This document shows positions 1 through 10,500 of a stretch of DNA of 45,008 nt, piece by piece; within the stretch, counting starts at the first letter, position 1, and each line of letters opens with the position of its first letter. The notes under the pieces are model-generated. The model did not search any database and was not told where the DNA came from. It saw only the letters and a program-made list of their open reading frames with translations. The position numbers were made by a program, and so were the translations under genes. The DNA is from Lenisia limosa (Eukaryota; Protista; Breviatea): positions 1-45,008 of the forward strand of contig LPNZ01009396.1 in NCBI GenBank assembly GCA_001655205.1, given 5' to 3'.

Positions 1-3000
1 CCCCTACCCCCGAATCGTCGGTGCTTTCAACGTCGATATTACTGTCCACTGAGCCTTCGGATTTGACACATTCCAAAGCCGAGCCAGACCAGCCACTCTG
101 ATTCATGAAACTTTTGGATATGAAAAAAACTTTCTTCTACACAATGATATGTATCATATCATATAATAGTATATAACAGATTTATTCATTGTTTTTTTAT
201 ATTCAACAAATACGACCAACATTGGAGCATGTGATGATGGCCTCTCCAGCGCTCAGTTCGAAACCCTGGCTGCATTTGAGTTCGCATTTGTCGGATACGT
301 CGAAGGTTGGTCCTGCGCAGGCAACTTCATCCACGTTGCGAGAGGCCAGGTCTGGTTTAGTGCAGGTTCCTAGAGGCAATTAAATAAAAATATTGATAAC
401 TTCCTGGAATCTCGAAATATTTCATCAGAAACTGGCGTTCAAACCTTGTTCACAGGTCGGCAGAGTGGAGAAGGACGTTGATGCCAGGCACGTGATGGTG
501 GCGCTTCCGGCAGTCATGGTGTAGTTGGCCGCACACGACACTGTGCATGTCTGCGATATGAGGCTGGAATAATGTACAACACATGAGATGATAAAAGTCT
601 GCTCACATCGCCTTGGTAGTATGTAGGTGCTGTGCATGAAGAAACATCCACAGTCGTAGACGAAGGAACTGAACACTTGGGTACTGAACAAATTAGATGA
701 GATAATTACGCCCGTTTAGACAAGAACCTCTCATACAAGGAGTGCAAGTTGGCATGCCGGTGAAAGACGACGAAGATTGACACGTCATCACACCCGTGCT
801 CGCAACATAGCCGGGAGCACAGGACACTGAGCAGGTCTGTAGAAGTGAAAACAACGCCATAGAGTCACAATTTGGAAAACTAGTATTTTCCATTTCACAT
901 TCACCACAAACATCTCCTTCATAGTACTTGGGGGCAGTGCATGATGAGAAGTCCATGGAACTGGTTGAGGGCACCGTGCACTCAGTTACTAACCGGTGAA
1001 TATTAGTTGGGACACAATTATTTTGAAATGCAACAATAAAAATTGTAAAGATAAAATATTTGTTAATATTGTTGTTGATATCCCATTGTGTTTTCCCTCT
1101 ATTCGAAGCTGTTTTATCTTCCTCTCAGAACAAAAAAAAAGCAAGCCAGCTTACAAGGAGTGCAAGTTGGCATGCCGGTGAAAGACGACGAAGATTGACA
1201 CGTCATCATAGCCGTGCTCGCAACATAGCCGGGAACACAGGACACTGAGCAGGTCTGCAGAAGTGAAAACTTTGTGTTTGAACTATCCTGCTACAGCTTA
1301 TCATATGTCCTCACGTCGCCTTCGTAGTAAGATGAGGCGATACAGGCAGAGAAGTCCATGGACGATGTTGTTGGAACAGCACATTGAGACTCTGGAAAGA
1401 TCAGGTCCAGAACTTTATCAATGTGAGCCTACTTGGGATACAGGAAGGAACACCCGAGAACTGCCCGCTTGATTCGCATTTAATAGACGCTGACTCTGGC
1501 CGATAGTTGGCAGCACATGTCACGGTACAGGACTATTGCGTGAGATACAACACTGGTCTTACGTCTCCTTCATTGTACTTTGGCTTGGTGCATGCTGACG
1601 TCACGAACTTGGGATCCGTCGGCAGGGCACATGACGTAGCTGCCCATTAGTCGGCTCAACAAACACACTCGGATACAAAACAGTCCCACCTGGAGAGCAA
1701 GTGGGCAGGTTAATGAAAGTTCCGCTGCTGCATCGAGGTGTCAAAGAACCGGCAGTCAGAGTAAAGCTATCTTTACAGTACATGCGGCACTTCTACACGA
1801 GTTAGCATGGCGCTGCTAGCAAACCTCATTTTCAGCGTATTCAGTCTGGGTACAGAGGTTGTCGACATTGGCGGCTGTTGGCGGCGAGCATGGTGTTGCT
1901 GAGGAATGAGAAAGCCATTTAGCAAGTTTGTTATTCGACAATACCCCCAGTAACACTCCAGCAACAACATCCCACAATACCCCACAATACCCCAGTATTC
2001 CTCAGCAACATCCCAGCATCCCGACGCACTCGCGACGCACTGGAGGTTGCCGTCAAAAGTGCCGTCGGCCTGGCATCGGATACGCCGGCTTCCTTTGAAG
2101 TATCTAAAACCTGGCTTGCACTTGAGTTCGCAGGTCTAAGGTCATGATGCATTGAAGAACCCACTTGGTCGGTTGTATACGGCCCAGAGGTACAGAGCGA
2201 TTCAACACTGCTGTCGATCGTGGGAAGAGGGCATGTGACAGCTGCAACATCAGACTTTCAGGTACACTAACCTGATACGCACTCCAGGGCAGGCGTAAAG
2301 ACTCCATAGTTGCAGAAAATGGTCTCCAATCCCTTTGAACGGACAAAGCCAGGTTTACAGGAGACAGTACAGGACTATGAAGGAAGTGAGAATTCCAAGA
2401 CAGTCAGGCTACCTCATTAGGGTTGTAGTTGGGCCTGGTGCAGGTGTGGACAACATTGGCTGTAAACGCAGGTGGGGGGCAGAGCTCTGAACAAATGAAT
2501 ACATTACACATTGTCAGTAGTTGATATCATATGCTTTAAAGGCTCAGAAAAGCCCTTGCCCACTTGTTGCGTCAGACTCCACACAACCGGTTATAGAAGT
2601 CCACGTGTTGCTTGTTTGGCAGTATGTGATCTGAAAGATCAATATGCTGACACCAAAATTCGTGCTTACAGCGTTTTCCTTGGTTTTGTGGAAGCTGCTG
2701 TACGTGTAGCCCGGAATACACTCATAGTGACATTTCTATGAGTAAAGGTAAATGAAGGTTCAATGAATTATCTACTCACTTCATTGACTTCAAAAGTGGA
2801 CTTGGAGCACCCAACAAGCACCGAGTTGGCTGGCATTGTGGGGACTGTGCACGTTTCAGCTGCGGGGGAGGGGTAAGGCATCTACTCCATTACTATATAC
2901 TATATGATATTATATGGATACCATAAAGGTTCAGTAAATATTCGATATTCTACTTAATTTACCGAAGTCGCCACCCGTGACATACAAGTTGGAGTGCAAG

Positions 3001-6000
3001 AGGGGAGGCTAGTCAGTGAGCCTGATGAGCGACAGATCACCGACTGTTTTTGTCAAAAAGACCAAATTTGCTCTTTCGTACCTGTGAGTAGGGTCCACTG
3101 TACCCTGGTTCACACCACGCGGTGCAGCTCTAAAGCGTCAGGTAACGGACACGACTCTGGGTATCATGATACATATCGTAATCTCGTTCACTAAACAATG
3201 ATCCCCAATTTTACCTTGGAGGAAGTGATGGGAGTTGGGCAGTTATGGGCAACACCAGTAGGCCACACAGGGGTGGGGCATGTGGCTAAAACTTAAGCCC
3301 ACACCATTGAAACCAAAGACCCCCACCACCCCAAAAAAGACCAAATTTCTCAATCTCAATAAATCCTCGATTTCTTTGTCTGTACCACAGATAATAAAGC
3401 ATGAGTAAAGCAGAAACAACGCACCTGGTGGGGTCAAAGCTGAGCACGAGAATGTCGACATGGTTCCGTCATCCTTGCATACCGATGCAGCACTGCCTCC
3501 TGTCAAAGGACAACGTGCCCAGCATTTCTGGAGTAGTCAACATGATGAACGTTGAATAAACAGTGAGGTACTCATGAATACATAGAGTGACAATGAGATT
3601 TCCCAAGGAAAAATCGGTCAAGAGTTATCCCGGTCAGTGTACATGACCAATAGAAACAAAGGGAGGTGGACATGATAAAAAAATAGGAGGGTCTTTTCGA
3701 CACGCCTCAGCAAGATTAAAGCTACCTGACATGATTATTATTAACGTCAACACCCTCGTACTGTTCCCGGAGTCACAATCGGTGGACAGATCCATTCATA
3801 AGCAGGGTAGGCCGAGGGGTCACAGGTGACTACATGTAAGCAAATGAGAGCACTGCTTACCAGCTGGAGTGGGCTGACAAGTTGCCGACAAACTGGTTCC
3901 GTCACAGAGTCCAACCTCCATAAGTTAGAGTGGCTATCAATTGGGACCCCCCCCCCCAAGCTCACCTGGCCTGAGGGGCATGTTTTGTAGGAGCTGGCCC
4001 CGGCCAAGTTAGCCTCTCGGTTCGGACAAATCGCCGTTCTGAGGTTCAAGGTATGATAACTAAGCATTCCAAACACCGCCCCAGTCATAGGATGGACAAT
4101 AATCAATAACAGAACTTGGATAGGAAACAAGAGGATATGACCTTCCGCTTCAGCCACAGCCACTTTATGGTTGATCTTGTTGGTTTCAAACATGTATCAC
4201 TTACAGCTTAGGACTTCCGTTCTGCTCCTACCCTAAACAAACCTTCCGTTACATACAGCGGCAAACACACAGTCGCCGTTCGACTTACTGCATTCAGTAC
4301 CCTGGGGTGTTAAAAGCATGTTAACATGACAAGCTGCCAACGTAGGGGAGGAGTTTGCAGTCTGAGCCGCAGCAAGAGTGCCCGTCACATTCTTCGCCGT
4401 CTTCGATTTTGTTGTTTCCACAGATGGATTGACCTGAGGGGTCAGGTCACAATACGGAACTTACCACTTGGGGCAACTCTAATGATCCAATCGCCAATTT
4501 GTCCGAAATCACCCTAAACAATAAGGCTTACACTCAACTCACATCTGGCATAGGGGAGTTTACAGCGAGCGCTTGGAGACTAAACACATCGATGGCGATT
4601 CCCTAAAGTTCATAAGACACAGGCTCCAATATTAATGTCGAAAGAGGCAACACACGCATACAGCAGGGNNNNNNNNNNNNNNNNNNNNNNNNNNNNNNNN
4701 NNNNNNNNNNNNNNNNNNNNNNNNNNNGCATTGGACTTTCACGAGGGACACAAGGTTGTAGTTGTTGTGGGCCGGGCCTACTCCCTCCCTCAAAGCAATC
4801 AAACCATTTGAAGTAGTCACTCCCGAGTCTTTCAAGGTGTAGCCCTTCTCTGTGTCAGTTGGAGAATGGATTCAGTTAATACGCCAACTCTTTTGGGCAT
4901 CGGGCATGGTCAGAATTTGGTATGGGCAGTTTGAAACAGGGCTGCCTGTCATATCCTCAACTCGAACACTTGCCTAGGGGTTAGTGCTATGATGCAAGTG
5001 GTGGGCCCACTGAATATGGATCGAAACCCATATGTGTGTTGGCTATGGTTGGGCTGGCTAGATCAAGAACACTGAGGTCATAATAAAAATAATAATAATT
5101 ATTGTCATCATGCAGCTCAATCATTCCATCATACGTGCTCATGATTTTCACTGACATTGGGCAGAATTCAGCTTGGTAGGGGGTGTCAGCACCTGTAGCG
5201 TGAAATCCATCGTAAATCTTGGTTTAGGGCTTATCTTCAATCCAAAAAAAAAAAAAAGACAAAATATGTGTGAATTTCCAAATTTCAGTTTGGCTACCCC
5301 GCCCAAGGCCACACCTTTCATAGGGTCGCGACCGTTCACAAAGTGGGCCCTCTAAAAAGTCAGCAATTCAGATCCGGACATACGCCATAAACGGGTCCGG
5401 CCTGGTTGTTGCCGTATTGGAGCTCAAGATTGGGGGGAAACACCACGTCAGACGTGTCATAGAGTCCCATCAAGTTATAATACTAAAGGAGTGAGACGGC
5501 GATACTGGACGTACCTCTCCCATTCCAAGTTCGAGAAGATGACCAAACTCGTGGGTAATTGTAGTGATCTGGAAAAGGTAACGGAGAAGGTCAAGGGCAA
5601 ACCTGTCTTGAAATTCCGTCATCAAACGCTGGGTGTTCATGGTCAACTGCTTGGTCCATATCGTGAATCTAACACATAAGAATCAAAGGCTGATAACAAA
5701 ACATTTCACCCTCCTCCCCACAGCAATCCATTTCATGTTGCCGCACCAATTCACATTCTCTGCAAAGTAAACATATGAAAAAAAAGCTGGATGGAGGTCC
5801 ATGTTAAAAGATAAAACAAAAGCGTCTCCATTAAAGCCCATCAAATGGTTTTTAGAGTACCCCATCACCAGGGTAAATGCGGCAATATCCGTTTCCTCCG
5901 TTAGAGAATGTGTATGAGGTCTCATGCTTCAAGAGAATTCCCAGTCCTACTGTGTTAGCCCCCAAAAATTGCTCATATTAACAAACATAAAACACACTTA

Positions 6001-6874
6001 CCAAAACCAGCAGATAGATCGGAGCAACTTCCTCCCTAAAGAGTCAGATAGATATTAGGGGATAGGAGTCTGTCAACAAAATAGCGGAATAATAGCAAAC
6101 GCTCATAATTGAGGGAACTTCAATGACATTATTCGGGTCGTAGGTTAGCTGCAGGTCCATGCCACTGTTCTTGAATGCCATTTCAATGAACGGGATGTAC
6201 TTTGCAAGGCGGATTCGAACCTAAAAGCACAATAAAGGGCGGCTTTTTGACAAAAACCAAATGCTTTTCATACAACGTGTGGTGTTTTGGAATAACAAAA
6301 TGTTATTTCAATGATAGAATAATTTAAAAGAGCACATTGACATGGAAGAAGTCCAATACACAAATAATAAGAATAGTAGAAAAACAGAACAGATAAACGC
6401 AGAACCTCCCCCACTTCAGCAAGACCACCAGTGGCAGCAACAAGACCTGGCTCGATTTTGGCGTGAAATGGGTGGAGCCATGCTGCCTCCTGAGGGGTTA
6501 CGCATCTCTACATGTGGCAGCGTAGAAAGAGGTGTAGGGGGTAAACGAATGGTGGAATAGGTCATGTTGAGCAGTGCTGCGCGATTCAAGACACATCTGT
6601 TTGTTTCCTTTCAGAGTTGTCTGCCAGCATTCCTTTAAATAAAGAACATGAAGCTAAGATGATAAATTAGCGTATTCGAACAATTGAGGTACATATTTAA
6701 GCATTCCATGTTGCCTCTCGTTGTGTGAAAAGGGATAATGACGGAAGTACCATGGCAGGGAAGGCGGGGGGATAAAATCTTTCGGTCCAACCCACTTACA
6801 ATGTGGCTACAGAAGAATGCTAAACTTAAATAGAGGGCGACAGAGAACCAGGAGCCCGACATCGTGCTGAGCAT
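1..6874 (-). CDS. Large multi-exon secreted/surface protein: signal peptide + HExxH zincin-like domain + linker + disintegrin domain + about 11 sushi/CCP-like repeats (ADAM-like; 3' end beyond the window start)
   Basis: Hydrophobic N-terminus MLSTMSGSWFSVALYLSLAFFCSHI at 6874. Exon 5568-5515 reads ITTITHEFGHLLELGMGE and splices across a 32-nt GT-AG intron to YYNLMG. Exons 4433-4342 and 4301-4243 read GQSICGNNKIEDGEECDGHSCCGSDCKLLPY / GTECSKSNGDCVFAAVCNG. Repeated Cys-rich exon pairs follow, e.g. CAVPTTSSMDFSACIASSYYEGD / TCSVSCVPGYVASTAMMTCQSSSSFTGMPTCTP. The exons I checked join in frame; the first 2-3 junctions and the gap at 4669-4727 are unresolved. Confidence 0.7.
734..1270. repeat. Near-identical 119-bp direct repeat (734-852 and 1152-1270) covering one CCP exon plus about 15 nt of intron
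   Basis: Direct alignment shows 4 mismatches in 119 nt; the rest of the flanking introns do not align. Confidence 0.95.
3591..3641. mobile_element. Degraded partial copy of the 78-bp Tc1/mariner-type MITE, inside an intron
   Basis: caatgagatttcccaaggaaaaatcggtcaagagttatcccggtcagtgta aligns to 24666-24715 with about 7 differences in 51 nt. A CAGTGA at 3561 lies where the left end would be expected. Confidence 0.75.
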
Positions 6875-7166
6875 TCACCCGACGGATGATTTGTTAGGCA
6901 ACTTCAACCCGTTTCAGCGGCGTAAAGCGCCTTATTTCTACTACTACCTGCTACTCTGCACAAATAACTTAGTAGTAAGTTATACCATGGGTAGTATAAG
7001 GAAGACCCAGTTTTACAGTTTATCAAGGCTTGACGCATGACGCATTTTTATGAATGCGCGTCACGCAGACGTTGTAGTGTTCTCACCAGCAGCGACAAAC
7101 AAAGTTATGGCGACGGGAGGAGCTGTTAGTCGGTATTGCATGTATTGAGTCTGTCGGAGCAAGGGT

Positions 7167-7410
7167 CACTCCCAAAATGTGTTCACCACCGCCACTATAG
7201 AAAACACGAAAACCGTACACCGCCACTGTTTTTCGGAACCCTTGGATTGTTGCTATTTTGGGTATTATTTTGTTTCTGGGATAGGAAGATATGGACAAAA
7301 TACGCCAAAAATACGCTGCACACCATACACCGCCACTGAAAATACGGTGTACACCGTACACCGCCACTTTTATCAACCACCAGAGTGGTGTTGAACATAT
7401 TTTGGTAGTG
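7167..7410. mobile_element. 244-bp non-autonomous CACTA/En-Spm-like element (intergenic)
   Basis: 24-bp imperfect terminal inverted repeats, CACTCCCAAAATGTGTTCACCACC vs CACTACCAAAATATGTTCAACACC (21/24). Four internal direct repeats CACCGCCACT at 7187, 7218, 7328 and 7359, and three AAAATACG. No matching 3-bp target-site duplication is seen. Confidence 0.6.
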
Positions 7411-7594
7411 ATCCCCCTTTGTATCGGAGTCCATCGCTCCAACCTTGCTCGTAACTCATCTCCACGACATACAAACAAAAAACACAAGACGACACTCTGA
7501 CTCAACTGAGTTGCAACTGAGGGAAACTGTTCCAAAGAATCAATCATACATTCTACCATTGGATTTACTATACAACTACTAACTACAACATTTC

Positions 7595-10500
7595 TTAAAC
7601 CTGATTTTTGTCTTCCTCTTTCTCCTCCTCCATCTTCTCTTCTTCAACCTTCTTCTCTTCAACCTTCTCTTCTTCAACCTTCTCTTCTTCAACTTTCTCG
7701 CCTTCCTCTTCCACCTTCTCCTCTTCCTCTTCCGCCAGCACGGTGACGTCATCACTCCTGTCATCTACCATAGTCGCTATCTCACCCATTTCTTCTGAGT
7801 CGTCATGAGGAACCACCTACGTAGTAAACCTCATAGTCTGCTGAAAATAACGAACTCTTTAAGCAAAACACTAATGCACCCTCCCACAGGAACTTCGGTT
7901 TCTTTCAACTGTCCCTTTCCTTCCTCCAGTCCCTCTTCCTTCTTGGCTGCTGCGTCTTGGTCAAGTTTGGCCTCCACACGCTTCTTGGACACCAGAGCAA
8001 AGTACAGAATGCCTGTATGTGAGAATCTGAAATGGGCTGAAAAACTAACCTAGTGCGTAGGCAGCAAGGAGAAGATACAGGGCAATGAAGTTGTCACTAA
8101 AAAGGTCAGGATAATATCCAGAAAATTATTTTATAATTGTTTTCGCCGGAAAAGATCCATTCGAATTGAGTTAAGAAAACGGAATCTAACTATCCCATTG
8201 TGAATATGATAGCCCTGGTGAGATAACTGCGGCATTACAAGACAAATTACAGCCCTTACCTGTCCCAGAAGACCATGTAGAAGAATGTGATGAACGAAAT
8301 TACGAAGGCAACCACGGCTCCAGCGTTACCAAATGGCGACCTATGTGATAAACAACAGGTCTTTATTTGTATAAACCATAATGAATGAATAAAAATAGCT
8401 TCGTTTGCAGAGGAGCTTCTGCATCCGCCTTCCCACCAATAAGGTCGGTCCATAGTCTTGTGATTCCTTCTAAGCTCAATGAAAGCGACAGTTTCGATCA
8501 TGTAGGCAATGAGCGTCACAAACACTGACAGGGATACCAGTGTATCAACGGACTACAGCGCAAATAAAAAGGGGTTACAATATGATACTTACGTCAGAAA
8601 TGTCACCCATTGTGAATGCTCCGAAGCAAACAACAAATCCAAATCCAGCTCCTGTATTGTGAGTTTTTTCCAAGCCGGTATGACAAACCAAGTAAAAGGG
8701 CCATGTAAGGGGTCTTGTTTTTGGCATGCAGACGACCAAAGAGCTAAAAGATCACTGCAAAAACACAAAGGCAGGCTATCCTTCAATCCTAAAAAAGTTT
8801 GACAAATTCGATCGAATTCCTCTGTCCTGTTTAGCCCCTTCAAATAATTTGATTGTGGGTATTTTGTTTCATAAATTTTTCACCACTCCCCTCTCACTTC
8901 AGGGAAAGCACCAGCCTTAGAGAGAGCATAAAGCTGAGAACCGTAGGCGTACCTAAGGGATAACGTTTGGCCAACATGCTACTCCACACAATACCCCAAT
9001 AACTTACATAATTGCATGGAAACTAGTAGCCATTCCTAAAAGTGTCACCAGATGAAATAACAATGCGAGACCTGAAAGACACGCATTGAGAATAGTAACC
9101 CAAATGACACACCGATGAGAGCGATGATTGGGAAGATGTCGCCGATACCAGAACCCATGATGGTGGTGAAGGCTTCCAGAAGTGGCTCTCCACTGTCCTA
9201 CTTCGTCAACTCACAAATCTTCAGATATCTTACAAAGCCTTTTTGCGTTTTATTTTTTATCCACCCATTCATAAAGGTCCAAGCCCCCCACTCTAAGCCC
9301 AACAGCTCCTGGAGCAATACCAGTATTTGTGAAGGCCGTCAAAAAGGCGCAAACTGGCTAGTTAGAACAACACAAAGCATAAGACATTCCTTTTGCACGA
9401 ACTCGTACCAGTGAGAGTGGCCAAGGAAACGACAATAGCCTTTGGAACGTTGCGCGTGGCGTCGGGACAATCTTCGGCTGCAATCGGCAGCTCGTCAACA
9501 GCAAGGAAGAACCAGGCAGCAAAGGGGATGGCGGCAATAATACCCTCGTATCCCTNNNNNNNNNNNNNNNNNNNNNNNNNNNNNNNNNNNNNNNNNNNNN
9601 NNNNNNNNNNNNNNNNNNNNNNNNNNNNNNNNNNNNNNNNNNNNNNNNNNNNNNNNNNNNNNNNNNNNNNNNNNNNNNNNNNNNNNNNNNNNNNNNNNNN
9701 NNNNNNNNNNNNNNNNNNNNNNNNNNNNNNNNNNNNNNNNNNNNNNNNNNNNNNNNNNNNNNNNNNNNNNNNNNCTATCGAAGACCCCCTCCCCCCATAC
9801 CCGCCATCATGTAGCCGGATCCGAGCCACATGACTGCAAGGACTGAAATGGAGACAACAGTCACGAAGAATGAAAGGCCTGGTTCAGTGAGCTCAGAAGT
9901 TCTCCACCATCCACCATCATGTATAAAGGATATTGCCTATTACATACAGTGTTGAATGGGAAATACAAAGGTTGTATCGCGACGAAGCCGTCAAAATAAT
10001 GATTAAACATGCCACGCCTCATACCAAGACTGGCGCCTGCGCCTCTAATGTTAACTGTGAGGAACACGCAGTAGAAAATGAACCAGTAGAACGGCTGGAC
10101 CCAATTAGGGGTGTCAAGAAGCTGCTCCATGAAGCCTCCCATTCCCGTCACAATCGTGGCAGGTAAGATGACATATCTATTATGTGAGAAGCCAGATGAC
10201 ATATACGAAGCCGAGCCAGGCATACTCGAGAGCAACGGCAAGTCCGATAAGATAGCCGCCCCAGGGTCCAAAGGCTCTCAAAGCGAAGGCGTACACTCTA
10301 GTCGGTTAGACTGAACGGAGAAAGAGGACAAGCGTACCCCTCATCCGAAGGCATAGCTGCAGCCATTTCAGCCTGACAAAAGCACAGACCAATATAGAGC
10401 ATCACGACAATCACCATGGCAGCAATCATTCCTGGTCCATTAGAGTGTAACACGTGGCATCGAACAAGGAAGCCAACCCACCTCCGAAGCCTCCACGATC

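Follow-up and report, generated by a model that had tools for sequence, protein, structure and literature searches.

A Lenisia limosa gene for a putative surface protein with a metzincin-like head, a shortened disintegrin-like module and at least eleven sushi modules

ADAM proteins (the adamalysins, MEROPS M12B) consist of a prodomain, a reprolysin protease, a disintegrin domain, a cysteine-rich region, an EGF module, a membrane helix and a tail. Pappalysins (MEROPS M43B; PAPP-A) couple a metzincin head to five complement control protein (CCP, or sushi) modules, whereas selectins, which are pure adhesion receptors, display a C-type lectin head, an EGF module, two to nine six-cysteine CCP modules, a membrane helix and a short tail. 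Here, we analyze a single intact gene of the protist Lenisia limosa (Breviatea) that invites comparison with all three designs. It occupies the minus strand of positions 1-6874 of contig LPNZ01009396.1 (assembly GCA_001655205.1; C9396), which in its full length of 45,008 nucleotides is referred to as the window. With moderate confidence, we read it as an intron-rich gene for a surface protein composed of a metzincin-like head, a shortened disintegrin-like module and at least eleven six-cysteine sushi modules. The module kinds are known. Their order, in which a mini-disintegrin stands between a non-ADAM head and a rod of six-cysteine sushi modules, is unusual and could not be matched to a described family; a literature word search for a zincin-disintegrin-sushi architecture returned nothing pertinent.

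The features shared with ADAMs are the signal peptide, an HExxH head placed directly before a disintegrin-like module and, in the only paralogue found (split between contigs C8559 and C10648), the type I topology. The module itself opens with the disintegrin N-terminal signature and closes with C-x6-C...C-x-G...C-P. Unlike ADAMs, the window head yields no match above 14.5 bits, and on the helix alone, to Reprolysin (PF01421) or Reprolysin_2-5, does not carry HExxHxxGxxHD and has neither a prodomain nor a cysteine switch; its disintegrin part retains ~10 instead of ~15 cysteines, with the middle gone, and eleven sushi modules take the place of the cysteine-rich and EGF regions. Pappalysins resemble the window protein in combining a metzincin-like helix, here with Peptidase_M43 helix matches of 12 to 13 bits, and a CCP array. 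They differ in that the window head gives no M43 match past the helix, lacks the third His and shows no LamG or Lin-Notch parts, while the protein contains a disintegrin-like module, CCP modules with six cysteines and, in the paralogue, a membrane anchor. Selectins share the six-cysteine CCP rod with a binding head at its tip, as well as the single membrane helix and short tail of the paralogue; unlike them, the window protein has a zincin-like head instead of a lectin, a disintegrin-like module instead of EGF and a protist instead of a vertebrate host genome.

Another gene of this genome, on contig C9461 (200-4330, minus strand), encodes a canonical disintegrin followed by several thrombospondin type-1 (TSP1) repeats (W-S-x-C-S). 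Genes of this type likewise have many tiny introns and set a disintegrin beside stacked extracellular repeats, but their disintegrins are canonical and score above the Pfam cut-off, their repeats are mainly TSP1, and they show no detectable similarity to the window head. C9461 was also considered as the missing half of the paralogue and ruled out, being a canonical disintegrin-TSP1 gene.

Exon chain and paralogue

The minus strand of positions 1-6900 was read with all its stop-free segments listed, and the exon table was built from coordinates alone, taking AG before and GT after each exon, the frame of the conserved segments and the lack of stops as requirements. The window presents short open reading frames, GT-AG introns and 13 assembly gaps, which points to an intron-rich eukaryote; there is no sign of human DNA, a virus or a toxin gene. 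The gene comprises 42 exons, all with AG/GT borders, in frame and free of stops, for a coding length of 3412 bases (~1137 amino acids). Its 40 measurable introns have a median length of 52 nucleotides and a minimum of 29, with fourteen of them between 29 and 40 nucleotides. The encoded order is a signal peptide, an HEFGH head of ~350 residues, a three-exon disintegrin-like module, a two-cysteine linker and eleven sushi/CCP modules, as listed below.

6800-6874, minus strand: exon 1, start codon and signal peptide (25 codons); ATG right after an in-frame stop, hydrophobic core, donor gtaagt
6507-6406, 6220-6101, 6035-6002, 5949-5869, 5759-5710 and 5668-5603, minus strand: head exons E2-E7, all before the zinc motif; paralogue collinear, 41 to 68% amino acid identity, phases close
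5515-5568, minus strand: exon E8, HEFGH helix; 78% identical to the paralogue
5384-5482, minus strand: exon E9, YYNLMG at its start; kept in the paralogue, borders ctttag / gtatgt
5217-5135, 4968-4889, 4849-4728 (cut by the gap), 4602-4543 and 4513-4465, minus strand: head exons E10-E14; collinear with the paralogue at 41 to 72% identity
4669-4727, no strand: assembly gap (run of N); in the paralogue the flanking exons are adjacent, in phase 0, around a 282-nucleotide intron
4433-4342, 4301-4243 and 4038-3966, minus strand: shortened disintegrin-like module, 10 cysteines; 31-nucleotide phase-1 intron to E14, Pfam 19 bits, hhalign 78.6%
3861-3915, minus strand: short two-cysteine linker exon; in frame, conserved in the paralogue on C10648
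3829-3762 and 3527-3425, minus strand: CCP module 1, six cysteines; from the exon table, collinear with the paralogue
2986-3285, minus strand: CCP module 2, three exons, six cysteines; from the exon table and paralogue comparison
2564-2859, minus strand: CCP module 3, three exons, six cysteines, classical Trp kept; from the exon table
2272-2486, minus strand: CCP module 4, six cysteines; Pfam Sushi 18.6 bits on the second-half exon
2030-2241, minus strand: CCP module 5, six cysteines; Pfam Sushi 25.3 bits on the second-half exon
1690-1898, minus strand: CCP module 6, six cysteines; from the exon table
1433-1639, minus strand: CCP module 7, six cysteines; Pfam Sushi 17.1 bits
1155-1391, minus strand: CCP module 8, six cysteines; from the exon table, second exon 97% identical in DNA to that of module 9
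737-988, minus strand: CCP module 9, six cysteines; from the exon table, duplicate or conversion partner of module 8
445-683, minus strand: CCP module 10, six cysteines; from the exon table
1-369 (369-221, then 97 onward), minus strand: CCP module 11, classical Trp kept, and an acidic linker running off the contig end; Pfam Sushi 24.6 bits, PDB matches

Two tiny introns lie at the key junctions of this chain and are typical of the gene, since its introns go down to 29 nucleotides. The HEFGH exon (5568-5515) is separated from the YYNLMG exon (5482-5384) by 32 nucleotides with gtacgt...ag borders, an intron that is real, because the paralogue exon begins with the same residues behind a much longer intron. 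The last head exon is joined in frame to the first disintegrin-like exon across a 31-nucleotide phase-1 intron (gtaagt...cctcag).

A search of the same genome assembly (49 Mb, 11,727 contigs) with the HEFGH segment retrieved one paralogue, on contig C8559, which also starts with a signal-peptide exon. Translated comparison placed its counterparts of E2-E14 in the same order at 41 to 78% amino acid identity, with unrelated introns. The second half of this copy was found at the start of C10648 by means of the first disintegrin-like exon (61% identity); there, the disintegrin-like module, the linker and the sushi modules succeed one another as in the window. The paralogue terminates in a hydrophobic stretch (~23 residues) and a tail (~15 residues) that includes KKKK, after which comes a stop codon. 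Given this membrane anchor in the paralogue, the window protein is likely to be located at the surface as well.

Two further observations concern the paralogue. Its C-terminal region (~689-992 of C10648:9001-18575) combines a three-cysteine run, KKKK and a tail end with Tyr-x-x-hydrophobic/Leu-Leu; speculatively, the first could be a palmitoylation site and the last an endocytic sorting signal. Positions 1-160 of C8559, within the intron after the last head exon, hold about five copies of a 28-nucleotide tandem repeat, which probably explains the break of the assembly at this contig end.

These results bear out all the structural elements of a preliminary description of the locus, in the order given there, namely, a single minus-strand exon chain, whose domain order the paralogue repeats; a signal peptide in exon 6874-6800; the splice between HEFGH and YYNLMG, a junction conserved in the paralogue; a disintegrin cysteine pattern, present over the three exons listed above; and about eleven sushi-like repeats, of which the contig contains exactly eleven, with six cysteines each and phase-1 borders. 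The proposed linker of roughly 200 residues was close in length (~183 residues separate HEFGH from the disintegrin-like part), but this stretch is domain sequence and not a linker, because it comprises six more exons that are all 41 to 72% identical to those of the paralogue.

Sushi array and disintegrin-like module

Pfam, homology and structure-database searches were run with single exons, which in the head encode only 18 to 41 residues. Nonetheless, two single window exons passed the 20.7-bit cut-off of Pfam Sushi (PF00084), with 25.3 and 24.6 bits, and exons of the paralogue scored 21.1 to 27.9 bits. The sequence matches in the PDB were all CCP proteins, such as factor XIII B, CD46, beta-2-glycoprotein I and factor H. 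Each of the eleven modules has exactly six cysteines, which is the selectin type of CCP, and is encoded by two or three exons, with phase-1 introns between modules, as is classical for CCP modules. The sushi identity proposed in the preliminary description is firm. Eleven modules are a lower bound for the window copy, because the gene is cut at position 1. Within the array, two stretches of 119 nucleotides (734-852 and 1152-1270), 418 nucleotides apart, are 97% identical; they correspond to the second exons of modules 9 and 8 with their splice borders, and such similarity suggests that part of the array was recently duplicated or converted.

The disintegrin assignment held in part. The module has 10 cysteines, compared with ~15 in a full disintegrin, the middle of the domain being missing. 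Pfam Disintegrin (PF00200) reached 19 bits in the frame of the second exon, below the cut-off of 35.1, and did not match the first exon in either copy. On the other hand, a profile of the first-exon pair aligned by hhalign with six canonical disintegrins from this genome, represented by their N-terminal halves (probability 78.6%, E 1.7e-5), and tblastn linked the first disintegrin-like exon to the best true disintegrin of the genome (E 2.3e-5). The first exon is thus likely homologous to true disintegrins. In the loop between two cysteines where ADAM15 carries RGD, the tripeptide is NGD in the window and LGS in the paralogue; with this difference between the two copies, conservation of an integrin-binding motif is unlikely.

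The zincin-like head

Comparison of the two copies singles out E8 as the most conserved head exon (78% identity versus 41 to 72% for the others). HEFGH is present in both, so that both His residues and the catalytic Glu are kept, as is a Glu eight residues after the second His. The predicted zinc helix is metzincin-like, with the canonical third ligand absent from both copies: the extended motif HExxHxxGxxH/D is broken at the third-ligand position, six residues after the second His, where the window has Met and the paralogue has Thr. The paralogue keeps the Gly of HExxHxxG, for which the window has Glu. The Met of YYNLMG is Ile in the paralogue. An I-M-S/T triplet ~60 residues downstream is conserved, but a Met-turn cannot be placed from the sequence. 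There is no long prodomain.

Pfam searches with every head exon at E values up to 10 returned only matches of 12 to 14 bits, all confined to the HExxH helix. These fell on M43, M10, M50B, Reprolysin_3/5 and DUF7897, with Peptidase_M43 at 12.3 to 13.4 bits against a cut-off of 23. Six-frame searches of the genome with M64, M43, DUF7897, M8 and Reprolysin found nothing at this locus. Specifically, M64, M8 and DUF7897 gave no match on C9396 or C8559, and M43 (PF05572) gave none genome-wide. The M8 search did recover other M8 genes exon by exon, whereas the Reprolysin search produced one 17-bit match in the whole genome despite several genes with true disintegrin domains. The Reprolysin negative is therefore weak at the exon level, because the search nearly missed the true ADAM genes of this genome, and analysis of the spliced protein may yet place the head, as a diverged member, in a known family. 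Three candidate designs were set aside in this way: an M64- or M6-type motif (HEFGH...EYY), which the M64 search did not support; a leishmanolysin-like arrangement with a distant third His, for lack of an M8 match at the locus; and DUF7897, the top weak match, which the six-frame search did not find.

Searches beyond the genome covered several exons. When 1.84 billion representative proteins, ADAMs and pappalysins included, were searched with a profile of E12 (window and paralogue), no true relative emerged. Its sole match, a protein of 1229 residues (P0001), was rejected: it consists of ~50-residue tandem repeats, weakly FLYWCH-like, and the summing of many weak repeats produced an artefact, a type of false positive worth remembering for short profiles. 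The E8 alignment retrieved from bacterial and archaeal genomes two metzincins, one archaeal and one from a Pseudobacteriovorax genome, whose helices are 73 to 81% identical to E8 and carry the canonical third His; they have no other likeness to the head. Queried with E8, E9 and the E12 profile, the PDB gave 0 sequence matches, and the ESM Atlas gave no usable match to E3 or E12. Metagenome scans with two exon profiles returned first nothing and then three SusC-like outer-membrane proteins, which were dismissed as sharing one chance word. Relatives outside this genome were not found within reach of 40-residue queries, which is a short reach. Inside the genome, no head exon bears a resemblance to any sequence at seven loci around the true disintegrin genes.

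The preliminary description had called the protein ADAM-like. Taken as a statement about an M12B protease, this is not supported, given that no exon matches Reprolysin or M43 beyond 12 to 14 bits, that the third ligand is absent and that no long prodomain exists. Neither an ADAM-type (M12B) nor a pappalysin-type (M43) origin of the head is shown.

Proposed protein and alternative readings

In the architecture that we favor, a signal peptide is followed by the head of ~350 residues, built around the metzincin-like HExxH helix and set directly on the disintegrin-like module. This module forms the neck, and the rod behind it consists of at least eleven six-cysteine sushi modules of the selectin type. 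Judging from the paralogue, the protein is probably of the type I surface class and most likely finishes in a single membrane helix and a basic tail of ~15 residues. A CCP module measures ~3.5 to 4 nm, and eleven of them would make a rod estimated at ~40 nm, which would hold the head far from its own membrane, where it may bind, and perhaps cut, a partner on prey, substrate or neighboring cells. Such a layout would amount to an ADAM with a selectin stalk, that is, an ADAM-like or selectin-like ectoprotein. The head would either use another conserved residue as the third ligand, for which an Asp or His further on and the Glu at eight residues from the second His are candidates, or be a non-catalytic binding head. 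We rate an active protease at somewhat under an even chance, and a head without catalysis as possible but rather doubtful. The analysis shows the exon chain, the order of the domains, the sushi identity and the paralogue, whereas membrane anchoring of the window copy, metal binding by the head and any proteolysis are properties that we infer.

The conserved HExxH speaks for a metal site that works, the lost third ligand against a site of the standard kind. The head may be a dead enzyme, i.e., a zincin-derived binding domain that has no zinc or does not cut, in which case the protein would be an adhesion or recognition receptor. The replacement of the third ligand by Met or Thr and the Glu in place of Gly in the window copy are consistent with this, and the six-cysteine sushi rod, membrane anchor and short tail are reminiscent of selectins. 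However, both copies retain the two His residues and the catalytic Glu, the HEFGH exon is the best conserved of the head, and the conserved Glu eight residues past the second His could itself be a ligand. We regard a dead enzyme as a serious, if minority, possibility.

More tentatively, the head could represent a new zincin family that retains HExxH, holds its metal with a non-canonical third ligand and has no detectable relatives outside its lineage, mounted on a stalk of disintegrin and selectin-type sushi modules; the ADAM-like or selectin-like surface toolkit of the protist would then have evolved separately from that of animals. We consider such a family unlikely on present grounds. That the head belongs, strongly diverged, to a metzincin family already known (reprolysin/ADAM, pappalysin M43 or matrixin-like) and was missed since exons were searched singly is also unlikely in our judgment, and somewhat harder to defend; on this reading the protein would be an elaborated but otherwise ordinary relative of ADAMs or pappalysins in a protist. 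In its favor, the best weak helix matches are to M43, M10 and Reprolysin_3/5, the helix aligns with true metzincin helices at the high identities given above, exon-level detection is poor in this genome, and the disintegrin-like module follows the head directly, in the fashion of ADAMs. It is opposed by the third His or Asp missing from both copies, by head exons unlike anything at the seven true-disintegrin loci, by the lack of a prodomain and by an E12 profile that finds no relative among the 1.84 billion representatives.

The last alternative concerns the assembly. The run of N at 4669-4727 opens directly after the last readable codon of E12. In the paralogue, E12 continues for six further codons to a gtaagc donor in phase 0, followed by the 282-nucleotide intron and a next exon in phase 0; the window exon 4602-4543 also begins in phase 0, like its counterpart. 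Judging by this parallel, the gap most likely hides the ~six last codons of E12, the donor and part of the intron. The two copies are complementary: the window is unbroken at the head-disintegrin junction, and the paralogue is unbroken at the junction that the window gap hides. Because each copy is contiguous where the other is broken, two separate genes are very unlikely. Accordingly, although the gap sits inside the chain, the halves of the paralogue lie on different contigs and the window chain was read from genomic sequence, we give very little credence to a scaffolding artefact or to two genes (a secreted HExxH protein and a separate disintegrin/sushi receptor joined across the gap), since the gap falls within the head and not between the head and the disintegrin module, the post-gap exons 4602-4543 and 4513-4465 are head exons that also lie on the head contig of the paralogue, only 31 nucleotides, in frame and devoid of a start codon or a second signal peptide, separate the head from the disintegrin-like exon, and the 49 Mb hold two copies of each half, those of the window being clearly distinct from those of the paralogue.

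Several points nevertheless weigh against the favored architecture of a metzincin-like head on a disintegrin-like neck and a membrane-anchored sushi rod. The extended metzincin motif is incomplete and a Met-turn cannot be assigned, so that the word zincin is carried by one conserved 18-residue exon and its context, in a head free of family matches. The disintegrin-like module stays below the Pfam cut-off, and its loop argues against a conserved integrin-binding motif. Continuity across the gap, whose letters are unreadable, is something that we infer from the paralogue, and the exon chain as a whole derives from genomic DNA. Finally, the gene is truncated by the contig start at position 1, its own C terminus lying outside the assembly; when the 3' end of the window copy was sought with the anchor exon of the paralogue, the sole match was the paralogue itself.

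If the favored architecture is true, a protist joins three parts best known from animal cell surfaces in an order not seen in animals, and, together with the other ADAM-like mosaics of this genome, the gene would indicate that the shuffling of adhesion and shedding modules was active outside Metazoa. It would also provide a compact natural case for the role of a disintegrin-like module beside a non-ADAM head, and the absent third zinc ligand makes this head a simple test case of an alternative metal site versus a dead-enzyme receptor. The value of the example is tempered by the many such mosaics that the genome holds.

The remaining observations concern the contig itself. Its thirteen runs of N in 45 kb mark it as a scaffold of many small pieces, in which gene models that cross gaps need care. 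Just upstream of the gene, positions 7579-7816 contain overlapping low-complexity frames, those of the minus strand being rich in Glu/Lys and those of the plus strand in Ser, and the guanine-cytosine skew over 7001-8000 is -0.28.

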